Source: Mantamonas sphyraenae STR306 (lineage: Eukaryota > Protista > CRuMs). From it: 64,000 nt of DNA. Each line of letters starts with the position of its first letter. The first letter of the stretch is position 1. The notes below the pieces were generated by a model. The model was not told the DNA's origin and ran no database searches. It saw only the letters and a program-made list of their open reading frames with translations. The stretch lies in contig JAPMXV010000003.1 in assembly GCA_026936335.1 (NCBI GenBank), forward strand, positions 62,001 to 126,000, in the 5' to 3' direction. The translations under genes were made by a program, and so were the position numbers. Shown in pieces: positions 38,946 through 55,358 of the stretch.

Positions 38946-41900
38946 TCACGCTCGTCCTCCAACTTTGCGCAACAGCTTCATCACACGATCGTCTGGGTGA
39001 CCCATCTTCATCGGCGTCTGTCCCTGATCCGTTTCTGCGTTTACGTCCACCTGTGCCTCCACAAGTGCCTTGACCGTCTCATACGGCTGCTCTGTATGCA
39101 TGGCAAAGTGCAATGCGCTCCACCCGTTAAAGTCGCGTGCGTCGCCGTCGGCTCCTGCGTCGAGAAGGAACTGCAGCATGTCCAGTGTACCCTCGCCCGT
39201 CACCGCGACGTGAAGTGGTGTCAATCCCGACACTGTGGCCACGTCGATGTCCACGTTGCGCGACAGAAGCACCCTCGCTGCGCCCACGCTGTTCCACACC
39301 GCGCACAAGTGGATGGGATACGTCCCATCCGGCGCGGCCTCGTTCACCGGCACACCATAGTTTGCAAGCACCTGCACCCCCAGCGGTTGTTTGCACATGA
39401 TGGCCACGTCCAGCGGAGTCACTCCGTCCGTTGATGCCTGCGCAAGCGGGTCTGCACCTCGTTCCAGCAGGTACTCCATGATGCGAACCTTGTCTGTGCG
39501 TTGGTCCTGCGCAAACGCAGCCAGATGAAGAACCGTGTACCCGCTCTCGTTCTGCAGCTGCAGCATGGCGCCTGCCTCCACCAGCAGCTCCACGCACTCC
39601 GTGTACGATCCCAGCACGGCCAGGTGCAGCGCAGTGTTTCCATACACATCCAACACGTTGGGTGGCAATCCTGCGTCCAGCAACTGTGCAACCACCACTG
39701 CATGGCCATGCATCGCAGCCATGTGCAACGCCCCCTTGCCCGTTTCTGTTTGCGCCTTGGCCACCACGTTTGCTTCCAGCAGACGCGCGACCACGTTGTC
39801 GTACCCTGCGCACGCTGCGTGATGCAACGGCGTCCACCCGCGTGCATCCGTCGTGTTGCCGTCCACCCGTCGCTCAAGGAAGTAGTCCACCAACTGGTGG
39901 TGACCAAATCGAGCCGCCAGGTGGATGGGTGCAAACTTGTCCTCCTTGGTCGTCACCATCATCGACATGCCATAGTCGTCTGCAAGTTCTGTCACAGCGT
40001 CATCAGATCCGATCACTGCCGCCGTGTGCATCTGTTGCCACGATTCACGCACGTCGTCGCTCAGCTTGCCCTCAATCCCTTCCTCCAAGGCCTCGTACAC
40101 GGTCTCCCAAAACGCATCGTCGACCTCAGGCAGCAAAGCGCTCTTGGCCGGCTTCTCATCCTCGCCCACTCCTTGACCGTCACCTCCCTTCTTGCCACGT
40201 CCACGCCGCCCAAACACCCGTCGCCCCTTGTCCTTTGTGTCGCTCGCCTTGTCCTCATCCCCGATCACACTTTCCGTATCTTCCGCCTGCTCATTCTCTC
40301 CTTCGTCCTCACTTTCGTCGCCCTTGGCCACCACAGAACCACTGTCTGACATGTCCTCGCCTGCAGCTGCTGCTGCTTCGGCGGCCGCCGCCTCATCCTG
40401 AGCAGCCGCTGCTTCTGCAAGTCGTTCCAGCAACGTAGCATCTCCAGCGTCGTCACGCATGTTGTGTGCGGCCTTGACCACCCCCACTGCCTTTTCACCC
40501 AGGCTGTGCAGGAACAGAGTCACGCCCTCGCCCGACGTCGACTTGGGCATGTCCAGCAGCATGCGGTTGTTGCTCAGATCCAACGTCATCAGCTGGCCTT
40601 CCAGCAGCGACAGTTCGTTGCTCACCGTCACGATCTCGTTGTCGTTGGCACGCAGAAACTGCAGCGACTGCATTTGACCGAGCTCGCGAGGCAGCCGAGA
40701 CAGAGCATTGTGGGCCAGTCCAAGGTGCGTGAGTTTGCGCAGCAGAGATATGTCACTCGGCACGGCGGTGATCAGGTTGTGGCCGAGGCCAAGCATCTCC
40801 AGGTTGGGTAGCGCGCACAGCTGCTCCGGGATGGTTTCCAGCTGGTTGTGAGACAGAAAGAGCATAAGCAGTGACTTGAGCATCCTCATTGTGTATGGGA
40901 GTCGTTTGAGCTCGTTGTGCGACGCGTTGAGCGCCTCCAAGGACGACAGGTGCCCAATTGTCGCGGGCAAATGGCCCAGGCGGTTGTTGTTCACTGTCAG
41001 CTCGCGCAGCCTGCCCAAAAGGCCCAGTTCGTTGGGAAGCAATTGGACGTTGTTGTGGCTGCAGTCAAACACCTCCAGCTGCTTCAGGGCGCCCAGGTTC
41101 GACGGAATGACCAGCAGCTGGTTGTATCCCACATCCACCTCCCTCAGAGTGGCCAGTCCACACAGCGACACGGGAAAGTCGATCAACACGTTGTTGCGCA
41201 CGTAGATGCGCTCCAAGTGCTCCAGCTGCTCCATGTGTTGCTGCTGCAGCTCCCGGATGCGGTTTGAGGACACATCCAGCGTGCGTAGCGAGCGGAAGCG
41301 GCGGAAGAACGACGTAGGGAACGCTTCGTCGTCCATATTGTTTCCAGACAGATTGAGCGTCTCCAAAGACGGCATGTCGCACAAGTCGTCCGCCAGGCAG
41401 TCGATGCGGTTGCGCGACAGATCCAGCACCTTGAGCGAGGCCGCGGATGGCCACTGGCCGCCTGGCACGTACGAGATCTGGTTTCCGCTCAGCCGCAGCT
41501 GCTCCAGGTTCTCCAGATCGAAGGCCGCCTGAGGCACAGCATCCAGCAAGTTTTCGCTCGCAGACAGCACGCGCAGCTGCGTGAGGCCGGCCACAAAGGG
41601 CAGATCTTTGAGGGCGTTGTTGTCCAAGACCAACTCGCGCAGGGCACGCAAGCAGCTGAGTACAGAAGGCACGTGTTCCAAGCCGTTGTTGCTCACGTTG
41701 AGCACCTGCAGCGTGTCTCCCAGCCTCGCCATCCCAGCAGGGAACGAGTCGAACGCATTCAGCGAGTTGCCGCTCACATTCAGCGAACGTACGTTCTTCA
41801 TGAAGGCCAGTTTGCTCGGCAGCATGCGCAGGTCCTGGTTCACAATGTCCATTTGCTCCTTGTTTTCAATTTCTGCGCGAGCGTACGGATCGTCGCGTGT

Positions 41901-44900
41901 CAGCTCCAGAAGTGTGGCAAGATGGCGCATGGTCGTGCTCGTGTTTTCGCTCGCCCTCAGCTCTTCCGGGAAGGAATTCAACGGATTTCCTGTCAAGTTC
42001 AGTGTTTTCAGCTTCACCAAGTTGCTGTACTCCAGCGGCACGCCGTTCATGGCGTTTCCGCTGAGGTCCAGGGTTTCCAACAACGTGCAGAAGGACAGCT
42101 CGGGAGGCATGCTCACGATGGCGTTGTTGCGCAGGTTCAGGTCCAGCAGCTCGCGAAGGTTGCCCATGGCCGCTGTCGGGCTGCGGATCTGATTGCCAGC
42201 GAGATGCAGCACTTGCAGGTTTTTCAGCGTGCACAGCTGCACAGGCACCTCGGAGAAGGCGTTGCTGCTCAGATCGAGGCGAGTCAGCGAATGCGTGTTG
42301 CCAAACTCGTCCGGCAGCGAGTGCAGCTGGTTTCCAGAAAGGAGCAGAGACTGAAGCCCGTCCAGGGTGTCCAACGTCACCGGCAGCGACATCAGCGCGT
42401 TGTTTGACAGATCCAGATGCACCAACGTGTAGCACAGGTTGCCAAACCGCTCGCCCAGATGTTTCAAGGCGTTTCCGCTCAAGTTGATGCGCCTCACGTT
42501 CTCCATACGCATCAGCGCTTCGGGTAAGAGTGTGAACGCGTTGTTGCTCACGTCCACACGCTCCAGCTCGTCGCAATCGCTCAACACATACGGCAGCGTC
42601 GTGAGGCCATTGTTGTTCAGGTTCATGCTCAGCAGCGAACTGTTGCTGCACGCCTCAAACGGCAGGAACTGCAGGCCCAGGCTGGACAAATCGAGGTTGC
42701 GCTTCGGCGCCTTGTTCGCCTTCAGTGCAGACTCGGCCTTGGCGAGCTCTTCCGCATACTGTTGACGCAGATCCTCCAGAAACAGGGCCTCGTTGAAGTT
42801 GTCGCCTTGGGCCACTGGGTTGTCGTTGATACCCAACACGACGAGCGACCGCAATCCGCCCAGCTGCTTCGGCACACTCTGGATGCTGTTGCTCCAGAAA
42901 GTGGCGGTGGTCAGGTCGCGCATGTTTGCGATCTCCTGCACCAGTTCGTAGATGTTGTTCAGTTGCAGCTCCAATTTGGTCACGTTTGTCAACGCGCCAA
43001 TGTCACGCGGGATGACGCCGATGCGGTTGCCAGCCAGGTTGAGCTGCTTCAGGTTGTACAGCGCGCACACAGGGAGCATGTCTGCCACGCTGTTGTTGCC
43101 CATAGACAGGCACTCCAGGGTGGGCGCCGTGCCGGTCAGTTGCAGAGGGATGCTTTCGATCGCGTTGTTGTCCAGGTAGAGCGTCTGCAGGTGCTTGCAG
43201 TTGCCCACCATGGCAGGCACGTGCATAAGCTTGTTGTTGTTTGCGTACAACTCGCGAAGACGGTTGTTGCTGTGGAACAGCGTTTGCGGGAGGTGAACGA
43301 GCTCGTTGTGGCTCACATCCAGGTACTGTAGTTTGGACCACAATGCCAGTTCTTCAGGCACGGTATGCAGCTGATTGAACGAAAAGTTGGCGCTAATGAC
43401 GTTTTCCAAGGCTCCCAGCAGCGGTTCGATGCTTGTAAGCGCATTGTTGCTGAGGTCGATCTCGCGGAGCTGATTGAGCAGGCACAGGGAGACGGGCACG
43501 CGAGCGAGGCCACACATGGACAAATCGGCGGTGATGTTGGTACGGCGGCTGGTCTTTTCCATCTTGGCAGCCGTTTCGTCCGTCAGCGCGTGCTCGTACA
43601 CGAATGCGTCGTAGAAGCGGTTGCCCTTCTTGATCAGATCCAACCTGTCTGTCAGACGGCCGCGCTTCTTCATGGCTCGTGCGTTGAGCTTGGACACGTC
43701 CTGTGGCATGGCGTCAAGCTCGCTGCGCACCTGCAGAAACGTCTTGCGTCCCGTCTTCATCGAGTCTAGGTTGCGCCCGATCACAGAGCGCAGAGTCTCG
43801 ATGCTGCGGTCGATGTCGCCCGAGGCTGTGCCGTCGAATGGATCTGCCTGTTGGCTGAGCGAGGATGCAGAGGAAGACGAGGCCTGGGAGCCGTCGCGTG
43901 TGCTGTGCTTCTGCCTGTTCGAACGCAGACGCTCGTTGGTTTCGCGTTGCTCCTCGATGCAGTCGTGCACCTTTGTGATCCACACGTCACGCACCACCCA
44001 TGTCGGTGCACTTGCTGTGAAGATGCTCGTTTCGTTGCCGCCCGCAGAGATGGTCACGACGCGGAACTCGTTCGGGTAGGTCGGGTCCAAGTCATCGATG
44101 CTCTGCACGGTCGAGTTGCCGATGTTGAACACGCGGAATGGCGCGCTCTTCTCGTCTTTGGACACCAGGATGCGGTTTCCCTCCAGCCTGCACACACACT
44201 TGTCCCACACATTTTCGTCTTGGCTGTCGCTTGCCTCCAGCAGCTGCTCCTGAGCGGAGGAGGCTGACGAGGACGACGCCGACGACGCCGACGACGAAGA
44301 TGACGACGACGTGCTTACACCTCCGCGGTCTTTCATCACATGCATGATGGACACGGGTGGGGTGTTGACAAATCGTGCAATGATGCGTGCGTTCTCCGCA
44401 AACGAGACGCCTTGCTCACGCATGAGCCTGTGTTGCGCCTCGTCGTCGTCAATCACATCCTCAAAGTAGGCGTGAATGAACGCGTCGTACTCGCTTTGCT
44501 GTGCACGCTCGTCGTGAGGGGACAGAGCCGAGATGCGCTCCAGGCGGTTCTTGGAGCTGATCTGCACGGTCTGGCTGCCAGATGGGTGATGTGAAGGCGA
44601 CTGATTCGGAGCTTCCATGATGCGTGCGGCTGCATGCAGACGTGCACGGTCGACAGATGCCATACCTGCGGTGCCGAATCGTTGGCTACCTTTGCCTTTG
44701 CTGCTGCTCTCGCCATTGCCCGACGACTTGTCTCGACTGATGATGGCGTCCATGTGACTCTTTTTGCGCAGGAACTGGGACTTTCGTGCTTGTTCGACAT
44801 CCAAGCCAGACACAGGGCGCACCAGGGACGCATCCAGGCGAGCGTGTTGCGAGACAGCGACGCTCTTGCGCAAGTCCCTGCCGTTCTTCTTGCTGCTTTC

Positions 44901-46252
44901 AGAGGCACTGCCATCACTTCCCTGGCTGTCTTTGCTGCTTTCCGATGGATTTGACGACGAGGTGGATGCCTCATCCAGCTTGAGATCTTCGCCCGTGCGG
45001 CTTTTGCGATGCAGCGCCTTGCTACTCGCAGTCACTCGACTGTGTGCGTTTTCGTTCGACGTGGGTTTCTGCACATCGATCATTCGTGTGTATGAATGGA
45101 TGGTTGGGTGGGTTGGGTGGGTGGGTTGGGTGGGTGTGTGTGTGTGTGAGAGAGAGAGAGAGCAAGCATCGCCTGCAGGTACATGCGCCAATGGCAAGCA
45201 CCGCCATCGCAGCCATACGACACCTCTGTGTGCGTGCATGGCCCATTCACATCAATGGCTGCGGTACCGGGTGGCATGCAACATTCAACTTGCGCCCATC
45301 CACTCACCTCGGCCTCGGCAAACGGCGGTTGAAAGTCATCGGGAAAATCGTTGCCAGCCTGCCACACAACGCTTTTCACGTGCATGCCGTTCATGGAAGA
45401 CGGCAGTGTCTTGAGTCTGGGAGCGCACGTGCAGTGTTACCCGACACAGGGTCAAGGAAGAGCAGAGTACGCCCGCGCGTGCCGGTGTCCAGCGTGCGTC
45501 AGCAGAGGGCGCGTGGCTGGGAGGGAAAAACATGGGCGACATAGGTGAAAAACCCACCGGTTGTAGTGGATGCTCAAGGTCTTGAGCATCTTGAGGTCTG
45601 CGATCGATGCTGGCAGCTCGATGAGCTCGTTGTGTTCGAGGTGCAGAGATGCGAGGGCGTACAGGGAGCCCAAGGCGTCGGGCAGCACCACCAGTTGGTT
45701 GTGGCTCAGATCCAGCAGCGACAAACTCTCGGCAAGCCTGCCAAACACGGCTTCCTGCACGCGTGGCAGACGGTTGTGGTCCAACTTCAGCGTCTGCAGA
45801 CGCTCCAGAGATCCCAAGGCATCCGGCAGCTCCTCGATGCTGTTGTTCGACAGCACCAGCGTGGTCAGCGCCTCCAGTTTGCCAATGTCCGCTGGCACGG
45901 CTGTCAAAAGGTTTTCACTCAAATCAAGCGTGCTCAGCGTCGCAAGCTGGCACACCACCGAAGGAAACACTGTCAACAGGTTGCGCGCCATCACAAGCGT
46001 GTGCACGTTCTGCGGTACCTCCTTTGCCGCGATGGGGAACGCCGAAAGCGAACTCTCGCTCAGATCCAGGAGACCGTACGTCGCCGCGCTTTCCAGCACT
46101 CGCTTCTCGGTCGCTCGGTCTAGAGAGCGCACGCCGTTGGCACTGCTTCCTGCGCTTCCTTCGCCTTCATCCAAGTCGTCCAGTGCAATGGGACCATCGT
46201 CCGACCGCTTCTTCCGCCCAAACTTTGGCGTCCACTTCTTTTTGCCTGGCAT
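38946..46252 (-). CDS. Giant LRR-PH-LRR-ankyrin repeat protein (paralog 2); introns 45417-45557, 45069-45307
   Basis: Same domain order as paralog 1; clear PH domain (WDKCVCRLEGNRILV...FTASAPTWVVRDVWITKV); first intron at the same YNR phase-2 position. Confidence 0.88.
45105..45162. repeat. Intronic (GGGT)/(GT)n/(GA)n simple repeats
   Basis: Directly visible within the predicted intron 45069-45307. Confidence 0.8.
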
Positions 46253-48275: not shown

Positions 48276-51200
48276 TTACACGTCGCCTCCTCCGCTCGAC
48301 GCTTGGTACAGCGGGTTCACGCCAAAGCCGGCGTCCTCCTCAAACAGCGGGTTGGACACCATGAACGAGTCAAAGTCGGGCGACATGTCGTCCACGCTGG
48401 CCGAGGCGCCGCGGTTCTTCATCAGCTCCTTCAGGAAGTAGGAGAGGATGCCCACACCGCCAGCCGCACCTGCGACCACACCCACGGTGCTGCCGGTGCC
48501 GTTGTTGCCCGAAGTGGTGCAGTTTGTGCCGTTGGTGGCACTGCCGCCACACACGCCGCACGCATCGACCACCTTGCCCGAGTTGGGGATGCCGTCGCAG
48601 CCAGCGCACGTGCTGTTGTCTCCACCACACAGGCCGCACGCATCGTACACGGGCTTGTTGCCTGCGTTGGCGCCAGTGTACAGTTGGTTGTCGCAACCGC
48701 GGCATGTCGACGTGTCGCCGCCGCACACGCCGCATGCATCCACCACCTTGCCCGAGTTGGGCACACCGTCGCAACCTGCACACGTAGATCCAGTGCCATT
48801 GCACACTCCGCACGCGTCGTACTTCAGGTTCGATCCCATCACGCCGTCACAGCCGCGGCAAGACGACCCATCGCCGCCGCAGTCACCGCACGCATCCACC
48901 ACCTTGCCCGAGTTGGGCACACCGTCGCAGCCCACGCAGGCGTCCTTGCCGCCGCAGATGCCGCACTTGTCGTAGAACACGCACGAGTTGGGGATGCCGT
49001 TGCATGGCACGCACGACTTTCCGTCGCCGCCACACACGCCACAGGCATCCACCACCTTGTTCGAGTTGGGCACACCGTCGCAACCGGCGCACGTCGATCC
49101 GTCGCCGCCGCAGATGCCACATGCATCCACCACCTTGCCCGACGCGGGCACGCCGTCGCAGCCCTTGCATGTGCTGTCGTCACCACCGCACACACCGCAC
49201 TTGTCCAATCCCTTCCACAGAGCCGGGTTGGTGGAGCCTGGCGTGTTGGCGCAGTCCTTGCTGGCGTCGCACACGTCAAAGAAGCCCAGCGGGCCACAGC
49301 CGCCGGCGCAGTTGACCTTGGCCGGGCCGTTCAGCACGCCGTTGCAATCCAGACAGCTCTTGCCGTCGCCACCGCACACGTTGCACTGGTCAACGACCGC
49401 CGGGGTGCCAGGCGGTGCCACAGGGATACCGTCGCAGCCGCGGCACGTAGAGTTGTCGCCGCCGCACACGCCGCAGATGTCCACCTTCTTGTGGGAGTTG
49501 GGCACACCGTCGCAGCCCAAGCACGTCGAGTTGTCACCGCCACACTGGCAGCACTGGTCGTTGACCTTGCCAGAGTTGGGCACGCCATCGCAGCCCAGAC
49601 AGCTCTTGCCATCGCCGCCGCACACGCCGCACACATCGTTGACCTTCTGCGAGTTGGGACGTCCGTCGCAGCCCAGGCAGCTCTTGCCGTCGCCACCACA
49701 CACGCCGCACACATCCACAGTCTTGCCCGAGTTGATCACACCGTCACAACCCGTGCACGTGGTGTTGTCACCACCGCACACGCCGCAGGCATCGTAGGCC
49801 TTGGGCGAGGCGGGGGGCGGGTACAGAATGCCGTCGCAACCTGTGCAGGCCGAGTTGTCGCCACCGCACACGCCGCATTGGTCGTACACCTTCTTGTTGC
49901 CGCCAGGGTACAGCTGGCCGTCGCAGCCGCGGCACGAGGACGAGTCGCCGCCGCACACGCCACAGGCATCGTAAGCCTTGGGGGGCACGCCGTTGGCAGG
50001 CGGGTACAGGATACCGTCGCAACCCGTGCAGGTGGAGTCGTCACCGCCGCACACGCCGCAGTTGTCGTACTTCTTCACCGGCACGCCATTGGCAGGCGGG
50101 TACACGTTGCCATCGCAGCCTGTGCAGGCGCTGTTGTCGCCACCGCACACGCCGCAAGCGTCGTACACCTTCTTGTTGCCGTTGGGATAGAGCAGACCGT
50201 CGCAGCCAGTGCAGGTGGAGTTGTTGCCACCGCACACGCCGCAGAAGTCATACTTGGCCGGAGGCACGCCACCAGAGGGCGGGCGCACCACACCGTCGCA
50301 ACCGACGCAGCTCAGGCCGTCGCCGCCACAGATGCCGCACTGGTCGTACACCTTCTTGTTACCCTGAGGATAGGGAAGGCCGTCGCAGCCCACGCAGCTC
50401 TGGCCGTCGCCGCCGCAGATGCCACACTGATCCACCTTGGCGGGCTGGGCTGGCGGAGCCACCACAACGCCGTCGCAACCTGTGCAGGCGCTGTTGTCGC
50501 CTCCGCACACGCCGCAGGTGTCGTACACCTTCTTGTTGCCGTTGGGGTACAGCTTGCCGTCGCAGCCGCGGCAGGTCGAGTTGTCGCCCTGGCACACGCC
50601 GCAAGCGTCCTTCTTGGCCGGGATGCCCGGGGGAGGCACAAGCACACCGTCGCAGCCCGTGCAGGCAGTGTTGTCACCGCCGCACACGCCACACTGGTCG
50701 TTCACCTTCTTGCCGCCATGCGGGTACAGGAGGCCGTCGCAGCCCTTGCAAGTCGAGTTGTCGCCCTTGCACACGCCGCATCCGTCCTTCTTGGCCGGAA
50801 TGCCCGGAGGGGGCACCACAACGCCATCGCAACCTGTGCAGGCAGAGTTGTCGCCGCCGCACACGCCACACTGGTCGTACACCTTCTTGGGCACGCCGTT
50901 CTGAGGCGGGTATACAATGCCGTCGCAGCCCGTGCAAGATGAGTCGTCGCCCTTGCACACACCGCACTGGTCCTTCTTGGCCGGGGTACCCGGAGGGGGC
51001 ACAACAACGCCATCGCAGCCGGTGCAGGCAGAGTTGTCGCCGCCGCACACGCCGCACTGGTCGTACACCTTCTTGTTGCCGTTGGGGTACAACAGACCAT
51101 CGCAGCCGCGGCACGACGAGTCGTCGCCCTTGCACACGCCACATTGGTCCTTCTTGGCAGGGGTGCCCGGAGGAGGAACGACAACACCGTCGCAGCCTGT

Positions 51201-54200
51201 GCAGGACGAGTCATCGCCACCGCACACGCCACACTGGTCGTTCACCTTCTTGCCACCGTTGGGGTACAGCTTGCCGTCACATCCCTTGCAGGACGAGTCG
51301 TCACCACCGCACACGCCGCAGCCATCGACCTTGGTCGGCACACCCGGGGGCGGCACAACCTTGCCGTCGCAGCCCGTGCACGTGGAATCATCACCACCGC
51401 ACACGCCACACTGGTCGTACACCTTCTTGTTGCCGTTGGGGTACAGCTGACCGTCGCAGCCACGGCAGGAGGAGTCATCACCGCCGCAGACGCCGCACTG
51501 ATCCTTCTTGGCAGGGGTTCCCGGAGGGGGCACCACAACACCGTCGCAGCCAGTGCAGGTGCTGTTGTTGCCGTCGCACACGCCACAGGCGTCGTTCACC
51601 TTCTTGCCACCGTTGGGGTACAGCTTGCCGTCGCAGCCCTTGCAAGTCGAGTCGTCGCCGCCGCAGACGCCGCAGCCATCGACCTTCTTGCCGCTGTTGG
51701 GCACGTTGTCGCAACCGACGCACGCGTCGTTGCCACCGCACACGCCGCAGCGATCGTACTTCTTGCCCGAATGGGGCACACCGTCGCAACCGGCGCAAGT
51801 CTGTCCGTTGCCACCGCAAACGCCGCAGGCATCGTAGGACTTGGGTGTCGCAGGGGGCGGGTACACGTTGCCATCACAGCCGCGGCAGGTGGAGTCGTCA
51901 CCACCGCACACGCCACACTGGTCCTTCTTCGTCGGGGTTCCCGGAGGAGGCACAATGTTACCGTCGCAGCCCGTGCAGGCGCTGTTGTCGCCACCGCACA
52001 CGCCACACTGGTCGTACACCTTCTTGTTGCCGTTGGGGTACAGCTTGCCGTCGCAGCCGCGGCACGACGAGTCGTCACCGCCACACACGCCGCACTGGTC
52101 CTTCTTGGCAGGGGTTCCCGGAGGAGGCACGATCTTGCCGTCGCAGCCAGTGCAGGCGCTGTTGTCACCGCCGCACACGCCACACTGGTCCTTCTTGGTG
52201 GGAGTGCCAGGGGGCGGCACAATCTTGCCGTCGCAGCCCGTGCAGGCGCTGTTGTCACCGCCGCACACGCCACACTGGTCCTTCTTGGTGGGAGTGCCAG
52301 GGGGCGGCACAATCTTGCCGTCGCAGCCGGTGCAGGCAGAGTTGTCACCGCCGCACACGCCGCACTGGTCCTTCTTGGTGGGGTGACCCGGAGGGGGCAC
52401 CACCTTACCGTCGCAGCCCGTGCAGGACGAGTCATCGCCGCCGCACACGCCGCACTGATCCTTCTTGGCAGGAGTGCCCGGAGGGGGCACCACCTTGCCG
52501 TCGCAGCCCGTGCAGGTGCTGTTGTCGCCAGCACACACGCCGCAGGCGTCGTAGATCTTCTTGTTGCCGTTGGGGTACAGCTGACCGTCGCAGCCACGGC
52601 AGGACGAATCGTCACCGCCGCAGACACCGCACTGGTCCTTCTTGGCAGGAGTACCCGGAGGGGGCACAATCTTGCCGTCGCAGCCAGTGCAGGTGCTGTT
52701 GTCGCCCTTGCACACGCCGCAGGCGTCCACGTGGGGCACGCCACCGTTGGGGTACAGCTTGCCGTCGCAGCCCTTGCAAGTCGAGTCGTCACCGCCGCAG
52801 ACGCCGCAGCCATCGACCTTCTTGCCGCTGTTGGGCACACCGTCGCAACCGACGCAGGCGTCGGTGCCAGCGCACACGCCGCAGCGATCGTAGACCTTGC
52901 CGCTGTTGGGCACGCCGTCACAGCCAGCGCACACAGTGTTGTCGCCACCGCACACACCACATAGGTCGTACTTCTTGGGCGGCACACCGTCCTTGGGCGG
53001 GTACAGCTTGCCATCACAGCCCTTGCAGGACGTGTCGTCGCCACCGCAAACACCGCAGCCGTCGTAGATCTTCTTGGGCACTCCGTCCTTGGGCGGGTAC
53101 AGCTTGCCATCACAGCCACGGCACGAAGAGTCATCACCACCGCAGATACCGCACTGGTCGTTCACCTTCTTGCCGCCGTTGGGGTACAGCTTGCCGTCGC
53201 AGCCGCGGCACGACGAATCGTCACCGCCGCACACGCCGCACTGATCGTAGATCTTCTTGGGGATGCCGTCCTTGGGCGGGTACAGCTTGCCATCGCAGCC
53301 GCGGCACGACGAGTCATCGCCGCCACAGACACCGCACTGGTCGTACACCTTCTTGCCGCCGTTGGGGTACAGCTTGCCGTCGCAGCCACGGCACGACGAA
53401 TCGTCACCGCCGCACACGCCGCACTGGTCCTTCTTGGTCGGGGTTCCCGGAGGAGGCACAATCTTGCCGTCGCAGCCGGTGCACTTGCTGTTGTCGCCAC
53501 CGCACACACCGCACTGATCGTACGCCTTCGGGGTGGCCGGCGGGGGAGTGATCACGCCGTCGCAACCTGTGCACGACTTGTTGTCGCCACCGCACACGCC
53601 GCACTTGTCGTACACCTTCTTGGGGATGCCGTTCTCGGGCGGGTAGACCACGCCGTCGCAGCCCGTGCACGTGGAGTTGTTGCCACCGCACACGCCGCAG
53701 AGATCCTTCTTCTTGGGCGTGCCCGGGGGAGGCACAATGACGCCGTCGCAGCCTGTGCACGACTTGTTATCGCCGCCACACACGCCACACTTGTCGTTGA
53801 CGGGCTTGCCACCGTTCGGGTAGTGCTTGCCGTCGCAGCCCAGGCACGAGCTGCCGTCGCCGTTGCACACGCCGCACACGTCCAGAAACTCCGCCGAGAA
53901 GCGGATGTCATAGATCAGACAGCTCTTGACGTGCTCCACAATCGGGTACCTACCCGGAATGGACACCGGGTGCGGGCGCGGGCGCTCGTTGTGCTTGATC
54001 AGCACACCGCCTGCGGGCACCACGTACGAGAACTCGGCCTCGGCGTCGCCCGTGCCCACAAAGGTCTTGAGCAGGGAGCCCTTCTTGATCCCGTCCTTGC
54101 TGTTGACGTTGGAGTACAGGCTGATGGTGGAGCCCTTGTGCAACAGGAACGTCTTGAAGGTCAGCTTGACCTTGCACGCAGAGGGCTTCTTGCCAAAGTT

Positions 54201-55358
54201 GGGCACGACGCGGTAGCAATCGGGCTTCTTCTGGGAATCGAATGCCTTGATCCTGCCTGACTTGCTCATGAGGGTCTTGGTGACGACGCACGTGCGCTTC
54301 TTGCACACGTTCTTGCCACCGCAAACGCCGCACGAGTCCGTGGTCTGGATGTCGTAGTACAGATGGAACTTGGCCTTGGGCGACGGAGTGCCCTGATACT
54401 TGATGGTAATCGAGCGGTGCGTCGTGGAAAAGCCCTTCTTCAGGTCTGCGGGCGAGCTCTTATCGTCGTAGACGGCGAGTCGCTTGTAGACCAACATCTT
54501 CTGGGCCGGGCGGCCCACATGGTGGAACACAGTCACCGAGTCCTTGGTGCCAAAGTGCGCCGAGCCAATGCGAAAGTTGGTACGGCAGGCCTCGCCACCC
54601 AGGATCTTGATGTGCCAGCAATCGGCGCCGTTCTTCGGCTCGATTTTGCCCTTTCCGTTCTTCACGGTGATGAGCACGGGCTTCTTGCAGGCCACTGTGA
54701 GGGTAAAGACACCTGCTGTGTTAGACAGTGTGTGTGCGGTGCTTTTCCGGGTACGATGTACGGTTGCGCGTGTGTCGTACATGTGCACGCAGTGTGCTTG
54801 TGTGCGGCGCAGAAAAAAGGGGGATTGGCGGGGAGGGAAAAAAAATCTACTCACCGTTGGTGCTGGCAGTCTCCTCGTCGTAGACGACAACCTCCTCGTC
54901 ATCCGAGGTGGTCATCTGGTCGAGGTCGGACACAGTGTGCATGTCCGCGGAGTGGACCTGCTCATCGTAATGGTATTGGACCTTGTTCTCTGCTTCTTCA
55001 TGCAGAAGGGCGGCCACATCATGGGCCACATCAAAGTCGGCGTCGTCATCCACAAACGAGGGATGCGAGTCGCCTTCCTCCAAAAGGGGGGGATGCTCGA
55101 TGAAGATGGAATCATCATCACTGTGGAGGTGCGCGTGTCAGCCGTGTGTCGCTGCTACGGCCGGCCCCAGACCAGGCCGAGTCTACACCTTTTTTCGCGC
55201 AGCCATCCGCGCCTCTCAAACCCGCCGCGCGCTCGCCACCGGCATGCACACACACACACATTGGCACCAACGTACGCATCCAAGGTGCTTACTGCCACCA
55301 TGGCATTTGCCAGGAGCAGCAGCAACACCGTAAGCGATGTCCAGCTCTTGTTCGACAT
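48276..55358 (-). CDS. Large single-pass surface protein: signal peptide, acidic segment, two CUB-like domains, about 60 Cys-rich repeats, GxxxG TM and cytoplasmic NPLF/NPLY tail; introns 55121-55275 and 54713/54716-54854
   Basis: Signal peptide MSNKSWTSLTVLLLLLANAMVA; repeat DxCGVCGGDxSxCxGCDG; TM TVGVVAGAAGGVGILSYFL; tail SNPLFEEDAGFGVNPLYQ. Confidence 0.85.
48520..53885 (-). repeat. Coding tandem array of about 60 units of roughly 75-96 nt (four Cys per unit)
   Basis: Recurrent + strand motif ccgcacacgccgca...ccgtcgcagcc; near-identical 90-nt units around 52130-52400. Confidence 0.95.

Follow-up and report, generated by a model that had tools for sequence, protein, structure and literature searches.

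Here we describe a giant gene on the minus strand (48276-55358) of a 64,000-nt stretch of the Mantamonas sphyraenae STR306 genome, hereafter the window, to which all coordinates refer unless another contig is named. M. sphyraenae is a gliding, bacterivorous flagellate of the CRuMs group. The predicted product, of about 2,260 amino acids (aa), consists of a signal peptide, an acidic segment, two probably CUB-like head domains, about 60 DxCGxCGG...CxGC modules, a transmembrane (TM) helix and a tail, in that order. The combination of a signal peptide, juxtamembrane N-x-T sequons and a single TM helix in the predicted sequence marks it as type I, with the tail on the cytoplasmic side. By its ectodomain, the protein lies outside the Sib and integrin-beta families, whereas its cytoplasmic end is Sib- and integrin-beta-like; it is a vWA-less variant of the Sib and protist integrin-beta kind of receptor. 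On balance, we favor the interpretation that it functions as a giant Sib-like surface adhesion receptor, for the substrate or for prey, that is coupled to talin; by analogy with Sib proteins, the coupling of the tail to talin is in itself likely.

The hydrophobic segment preceding the tail is the only 19-residue segment with a mean Kyte-Doolittle hydropathy of at least 1.6 in the 2208-codon open frame that contains the head, stalk, TM segment and tail, and it is followed directly by Lys (K-E-L-M-K-N-R). The tail contains the only two NPx[YF] motifs among the 2208 residues, NPLF and NPLY, which are 12 residues apart from N to N, with NPLY located 9 residues before the stop codon. A first-pass annotation of the window, made from the sequence alone, had pointed to this combination of a GxxxG-type TM segment, a Lys and two motifs, and all these elements read on the minus strand as it claimed; its assignment of the hydrophobic segment as membrane-spanning is likewise credible, given that the hydropathy, the signal peptide and the sequons all fit a type I helix. 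From local amino acid frequencies, about 0.005 NPx[YF] motifs are expected by chance in a tail of this length, and about 5e-6 pairs of such motifs 6-16 residues apart. No Pfam family matched the tail at E<=10. Two other kinds of tail signal were considered and rejected: EH-domain binding requires a contiguous NPF, which the tail lacks, and a YxxPhi sorting signal does not fit the S and A found at the +3 positions.

The closest characterized tails are those of the Dictyostelium Sib proteins (SibA-E). These are also type I proteins with a Gly/Ala-rich TM helix and a cytoplasmic layout consisting of a linker, NPLY, 8 aa, NPLY and a short end, and talin is present in both organisms. The ectodomains differ: in the window protein, Pfam detected none of the SIBA-E_N, vWA_SIBA-E, Ig_SibA and cadherin-like domains of Sib proteins, and the head is CUB-like and the stalk consists of CGVCGG modules instead. 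Within the tail, the proximal motif of the window protein ends in F, and the conserved PPTDAFFGDSPF linker of the Sib tails is not present as such. In a reciprocal comparison, a profile of the tails of three Mantamonas paralogs was aligned with a profile of ten dictyostelid Sib tails obtained in a Sib-based search. This hhalign comparison of Mantamonas-only and Sib-only tails yielded a probability of 96.8 and an E-value of 2.1e-10 over 67 columns (36% identity), with a score of 54.4, compared to at most 14.7 for the controls (the reversed template and 22 column-shuffled ones). The cytoplasmic part alone contributed 42.9 of the 54.4, and the TM part alone scored 15.7 (E 0.0016). At the sequence level, the similarity between the Mantamonas and Sib tails, which the first-pass annotation had suspected, is real and colinear. 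When the Sib cytoplasmic domain was compared with Pfam, the only signal was a sub-threshold touch of Integrin_b_cyt on one Sib tail (E 0.076).

The genome searched for further copies of the tail consists of 25,061,354 bases in 78 contigs, with a GC content of about 59% in the window; the published M. sphyraenae assembly is 25.06 Mb in 78 contigs with 59.19% GC (PMC10492846). A five-tail profile identified exactly four loci, that is, the window gene, two paralogs on contigs C59 and C46, and a gene on contig C56, so that the search for additional TM and double-motif tails proposed in the first-pass annotation added three loci. The two paralogs were also recovered in a protein search with the tail, and a degenerate DNA pattern of two NPL[YF] motifs 6-12 codons apart matched 2 loci in the 25-Mb genome (the window gene and one paralog), with zero matches in the reversed control. 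Both paralogs retain the terminal NPLY and have almost the same TM segment as the window protein, the three copies being otherwise about 45% identical over this region; the linker between the TM segment and the motifs is poorly conserved among the aligned tails. The C56 gene encodes a protein of Sib architecture, with an Integrin_beta vWA domain, vWA_SIBA-E, six Ig_SibA domains and Cadherin_4/Big_9 repeats, followed by a Gly/Ala-rich TM segment and an NPLH-x8-NAMY tail. The TM segment and tail of this protein are in a frame adjacent to that of the ectodomain, the two overlapping at L005 3040-3587 with an offset of one base, for which a genuine frameshift, a very small intron or an error in the assembly could account.

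Beyond Mantamonas, a word search with the last 119 residues (2090-2208) retrieved mostly CGVCGG-repeat proteins with unrelated tails; among these matches, the tail is shared only by Rhizamoeba saxonica P0043 and, less clearly, by P0007 and P0008. Both P0043 and P0007, the latter from Mastigamoeba balamuthi, combine an Integrin_beta vWA head with CGVCGG modules, one TM segment and a short tail (NPLF-x8-NALY in Rhizamoeba), and the two tails align over 92-97% of the query region. An exhaustive search of 1.84 billion proteins with a profile from a five-tail alignment (A2) detected 30 proteins at the cut-off of E<=1e-3, half of which (15/30) display the full layout, that is, a TM segment, 21-28 aa, two motifs and the C-terminus within 20 aa. 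One of the matches, P0087 from Cavenderia fasciculata, contains all of the Sib Pfam families and is a true dictyostelid Sib; the ectodomains of other matches are of the Dicty_CTDC/PA14, plain VWA or EGF-like kind. Altogether, bearers of the tail cassette were placed in Mantamonas, Dictyostelia and Tubulinea. The window protein thus does not constitute the undescribed receptor class that the first-pass annotation took it for, given that the cassette recurs in Sib proteins and other protist surface proteins. Within the literature library searched, no paper named Mantamonas together with integrin.

By description, the window protein also resembles the Acanthamoeba mannose-binding protein and the Entamoeba Gal/GalNAc lectin, which join a non-integrin ectodomain to an integrin-like tail in amoebae that contain talin; one report describes these tails as integrin-like, with a potential talin-binding NPxY (PMC12686525). 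However, the ectodomains of these lectins are unrelated to that of the window protein, and the lectins were not among the tail-profile matches. The environmental sequences P0077, P0090, P0093, P0083 and P0098 are fragments or short open reading frames that lack a TM segment but contain between three and five NPLY motifs, in most cases spaced by 12 residues. These could be either fragments of longer tails or soluble tandem-NPLY proteins.

The only Pfam family identified in the whole open frame of the window protein is ADAMTS_CR_3, which matched in 15 scored stretches, always with the last ~27 positions of the model that correspond to the CGVCGG...C module; counting the module cores in the stalk yielded 59-62. 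In agreement with the first-pass annotation, there is no vWA/beta-I domain (PF00362) in the window protein according to Pfam. The C56 locus was the only one matched in a genome-wide PF00362 scan. The CGVCGG modules were found by word search also on unrelated protist surface proteins with REJ, IPT/TIG, lectin and cyclase architectures, and the stalk is therefore not specific to integrin beta. In particular, the Thecamonas trahens adenylate/guanylate cyclases P0040, P0042, P0050, P0051 and P0066 align with the CGVCGG-repeat region, indicating that in apusomonads this module also serves as a receptor-cyclase ectodomain.

The head region (~280 aa) had no Pfam match, and a word search with it, covering proteins of 1214-3864 aa, retrieved no relatives. 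Atlas feature matches of the head to CUB clusters scored 0.82-0.83, which we treat only as a lead. A single-sequence AlphaFold2 (AF2) model of the head (281 aa) had a pLDDT of 36.7 and could not be used, and a model of head domain B from a 5-row alignment of domain copies was marginal (pLDDT 54.8, pTM 0.57). A Foldseek search with the domain B model retrieved mostly CUB domains, along with the C-terminal domain of a clostridial enterotoxin (best E 1.2e-3, TM-score ~0.45-0.5). From these matches, both head domains are probably CUB-like.

Candidate readers of the tail, talin and other FERM proteins, are encoded in the genome; the first-pass annotation had suggested a search for talin, kindlin and vinculin. 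The F2-F3 region of the talin homolog on contig C58 matches human talin-2 with an E-value of 2e-69, and its F3 domain is highly conserved, with the KRWAA strand retained; the F0/F1 part must be encoded in upstream exons, and a genome scan for Talin_middle, run without a positive control, was blank. A talin-head-like protein on contig C4 and a MyTH4-FERM myosin on contig C32 could, to judge from their domains, also read NPxY motifs. For vinculin, the companion search produced one sub-threshold exon match only (30.5 bits). A scan for PID-type PTB domains (Dab/Numb/Shc-type), also without a positive control, found none, and at least four TM9/EMP70 genes are present. Complex prediction for the talin F3 domain (residues 118-226 of the L013 frame) with the 51-aa tail (score 0.08, mark 0.34) speaks neither for nor against binding.

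We infer the surface location and the adhesive role of the window protein, along with every binding step, on the following model. The CUB-like head would be held far from the membrane on ~60 disulfide-rich CGVCGG modules, and the TM helix and tail would form a Sib-type cassette consisting of the Gly-zipper TM helix, a linker of ~26 aa, NPLF, 8 aa, NPLY and a short end. By analogy with Sib, the PTB-like F3 domain of talin is predicted to dock on the proximal NPLF and the aromatic residues just upstream, and the talin rod and I/LWEQ domain would connect to actin, so that force on the ectodomain would be transmitted to the cytoskeleton, as with Dictyostelium SibA and talin A. Binding of talin A via the cytosolic domain is common to all five Sib proteins and requires the proximal NPxY (PMC9197732); SibA is required for talin A tension in Dictyostelium (PMC12686525). 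The distal NPLY may provide a second docking site for another FERM F3 reader, with the talin-head-like protein and the MyTH4-FERM myosin as candidates. Cargo receptors of the TM9/Phg1 type would escort the glycine-rich TM helix to the surface; the glycine-rich TM segment of SibA is sufficient for TM9-dependent surface targeting (PMC4510845).

Alternatively, the NPxY motifs might serve chiefly in trafficking, that is, in endocytosis, recycling or flagellar-surface transport, and be read by a FERM or PTB-like protein other than talin, including a SNX17-like sorting nexin; the protein would then be a scavenger or a turnover-regulated surface coat and not an adhesion receptor that bears force. This possibility, which we consider doubtful but worth retaining, gains from the presence of the MyTH4-FERM myosin with its IRS-type F3 and of the second talin-like F2-F3 protein, from the role of NPxY as a general ligand of the PTB fold (PMC9197732), and from SibA itself, the surface level of which is set by sorting in the endocytic pathway according to one study (PMC3279395). 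Conversely, the PID scan, run without a positive control, yielded no PTB adaptor, and in the Sib tails the proximal motif is a talin-binding site. Moreover, a trafficking role is compatible with talin binding rather than exclusive of it.

The structure of the stalk raises another alternative, namely, that the window protein is a degenerate integrin-beta paralog, derived from an ancestral integrin beta of the CRuMs/amoebozoan type with a vWA head, CGVCGG stalk, TM segment and NPxY tail. In this scenario, the head was lost, CUB-like domains were acquired and the stalk was lengthened, and the tail is directly orthologous to integrin-beta tails. The type I integrin-beta homologs of Amoebozoa and CRuMs (Rhizamoeba, Mastigamoeba and Rigifila ramosa) share with the window protein the DxCGxCGG...CxGC stalk and the single TM segment; the NPLF-x8-NxLY tail is common to the window protein and Rhizamoeba, and HDRKE is absent from both the window protein and the type I homologs. 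A DxCGxCGGx(3-6)CxGC stalk, along with the absence of HDRKE, has been described for integrin beta of amoebozoans and Rigifila, and for the latter, a member of CRuMs, a vWA head, this stalk pattern and C-terminal motifs have been reported (bioRxiv 10.1101/2020.04.29.069435). Accordingly, the claim that the ectodomain is non-integrin holds for the missing vWA head but not for the stalk modules, which are those of these homologs. The homologs differ from the window protein in having a vWA head with three cation sites and 3-35 stalk modules, as opposed to no vWA and ~60 modules. The union of the vWA head, CGVCGG stalk, TM segment and alignable tail in the Rhizamoeba and Mastigamoeba proteins favors descent from such a receptor. 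Nevertheless, we consider this scenario unlikely: the modules are found on many unrelated protist surface proteins, the sole beta-I protein of Mantamonas (C56) has a Sib-type cadherin/Ig stalk, and the 25-column motif block of the tails is too short for phylogeny.

Several observations weigh against the interpretation of the window protein as a Sib-like, talin-coupled adhesion receptor. The similarity to the Sib tails resides mostly in this 25-column block of two short linear motifs, which by itself does not separate common descent from convergence. The 12-residue motif spacing in 13 of the 15 full-layout proteins is a biased count because the A2 profile favors this distance by construction; in the paralogs, the motifs lie 10 and 13 residues apart, and one of these proteins has SPLY at the proximal position, so the exact spacing of 12 in the first-pass annotation stands for the window protein but does not extend to its paralogs. 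The fold of the head is weakly supported (pLDDT 36.7 and 54.8 in the AF2 models; Foldseek E ~1e-3). Metazoan integrin-beta tails carry two NPxY/NxxY motifs 12 residues apart. The window protein resembles metazoan integrin beta in this respect, as well as in the GxxxG-type TM segment followed by Lys and the location of the motifs near the C-terminus, but has neither a beta-I head nor an EGF stalk. Furthermore, Integrin_b_cyt (PF08725) did not match the window tail at E<=10 or any locus in a genome-wide scan made without a positive control, a search of the PDB with the tail profile found no integrin tail or other relevant match, and the membrane-proximal KLLxxxHDRxE (HDRK) motif is absent. An integrin tail of the metazoan type is not supported.

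Convergence, or a resemblance that lacks function, with short N-P-L-Y motifs of independent origin in a disordered tail next to a TM segment that is Gly/Ala-rich for compositional reasons, fits the low score of the TM-only profile comparison, the poorly conserved linker and the variable spacing among paralogs, but is highly improbable considering that the motifs occur nowhere else in the protein and are far from the chance expectation, that the terminal NPLY and the TM segment are kept in three otherwise divergent paralogs, and that the colinear layout recurs in four Mantamonas genes, Sib proteins and amoebozoan integrin-beta homologs.

The gene model underlying the talin-coupled receptor interpretation comprises three exons, with the splice sites and both introns inferred from the sequence and each exon translated and searched singly (Table 1). 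Exon 3 is contained in the 2208-codon open frame (48276-54902, minus strand), the first 63 codons of which represent intron read-through; the stop codon is at 48276-48278. The exon phases are compatible, and at 54713-54718 there is a CAGCAG (NAGNAG) acceptor, either choice of which preserves the frame with a difference of one Ala codon. An adjacent open frame on the minus strand (38946-45239, 2097 codons) encodes another giant protein in which Pfam identified many leucine-rich repeats and, at the C-terminal end, ankyrin repeats, along with a weak match to a PH domain.

Table 1. Predicted features of the window gene, and related or candidate partner genes elsewhere in the M. sphyraenae genome
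Feature	Location	Strand	Description
Exon 1	55276..55358	-	ATG and signal peptide, 27 codons plus 2 bases; then GTACGT donor
Exon 2	54855..55120	-	Acidic, His-containing segment; then GTGAGT donor
Exon 3	48276..54712	-	Head, stalk, TM, tail and stop; alternative start 54715 via CAGCAG tandem acceptor
Head	53886..54692	-	Two all-beta domains, each then one CGVCGG module; probably CUB-like
Stalk	48543..53885	-	~60 tandem DxCGxCGG...CxGC modules; Pfam ADAMTS_CR_3 (PF19236), E 2.8e-47
Juxtamembrane linker	48489..48542	-	Ser/Thr/Asn-rich, three N-x-T sequons just outside the TM
Predicted Gly-zipper TM helix (GxxxGxxxG)	48432..48488	-	Open-frame residues 2139-2157; mean 19-residue Kyte-Doolittle hydropathy 1.70
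Predicted cytoplasmic tail, 51 aa	48279..48431	-	Lys, 25-aa linker with aromatics, NPLF, 8 aa, NPLY, 9 aa, end
Membrane-proximal NPLF	48342..48353	-	Predicted talin-F3 site; P and L invariant in 5 aligned tails
Distal NPLY	48306..48317	-	N and Y invariant in 5 aligned tails
Paralog	Contig C46, ~207.2-214.7 kb		Signal peptide, acidic exon, CUB-like domains, CGVCGG stalk, TM, tail
Paralog	Contig C59, ~11.4-17.9 kb		CGVCGG stalk, TM, tail (regions examined)
Sib-architecture gene	Contig C56, ~75.2-81.4 kb (L005:2721-8937)	-	Pfam and tail profile
Talin homolog	Contig C58 (L013:2839-7767)	+	1643-codon frame: FERM_M, IRS-type F3, Talin_IBS2B, I/LWEQ
Talin-head-like protein, 924 aa	Contig C4 (L027:824-3595)	-	N-terminus similar to talin F2-F3, E 1e-13 vs talin structures
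MyTH4-FERM myosin, 2151 aa	Contig C32 (L026:16-6468)	+	Two MyTH4/FERM units, SH3, IRS-type F3

In Dictyostelium, talin bears force via SibA without integrins, and the existence of other talin receptors in unicellular eukaryotes has been posed as a question (PMC12686525); the same work places the origin of talin in the amorphean ancestor. The locus described here and its genomic context point to an origin further back and provide candidate talin-coupled receptors in a deep-branching gliding flagellate. According to Kang et al. (bioRxiv 10.1101/2020.04.29.069435), Sib proteins are restricted to Dictyostelia, in contrast to the presence of the C56 protein of Sib architecture in Mantamonas. Because a giant Mantamonas protein has the same TM anchor and double NPxY tail as Sib, the age and portability of this integrin-like handle seem to be greater than had been assumed, which supports a modular view of these receptors, with the tail cassette rather than the vWA head as their conserved unit.

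A bolder scenario, which we offer tentatively, is that the TM helix, the ~26-aa linker and NPLY-x8-NPLY compose an ancient portable talin-coupling cassette that predates the split of CRuMs and Amorphea, is ancestral to both Sib and integrin-beta tails, and was moved repeatedly onto vWA/Sib, CUB/CGVCGG, Dicty_CTDC/PA14 and EGF-like ectodomains. If this is the case, which would be of interest for the study of the origin of cell adhesion, force coupling through talin began with interchangeable single-chain receptors, integrin heterodimers would be one late specialization, and the three giant CUB/CGVCGG proteins of Mantamonas would be traction receptors for gliding.

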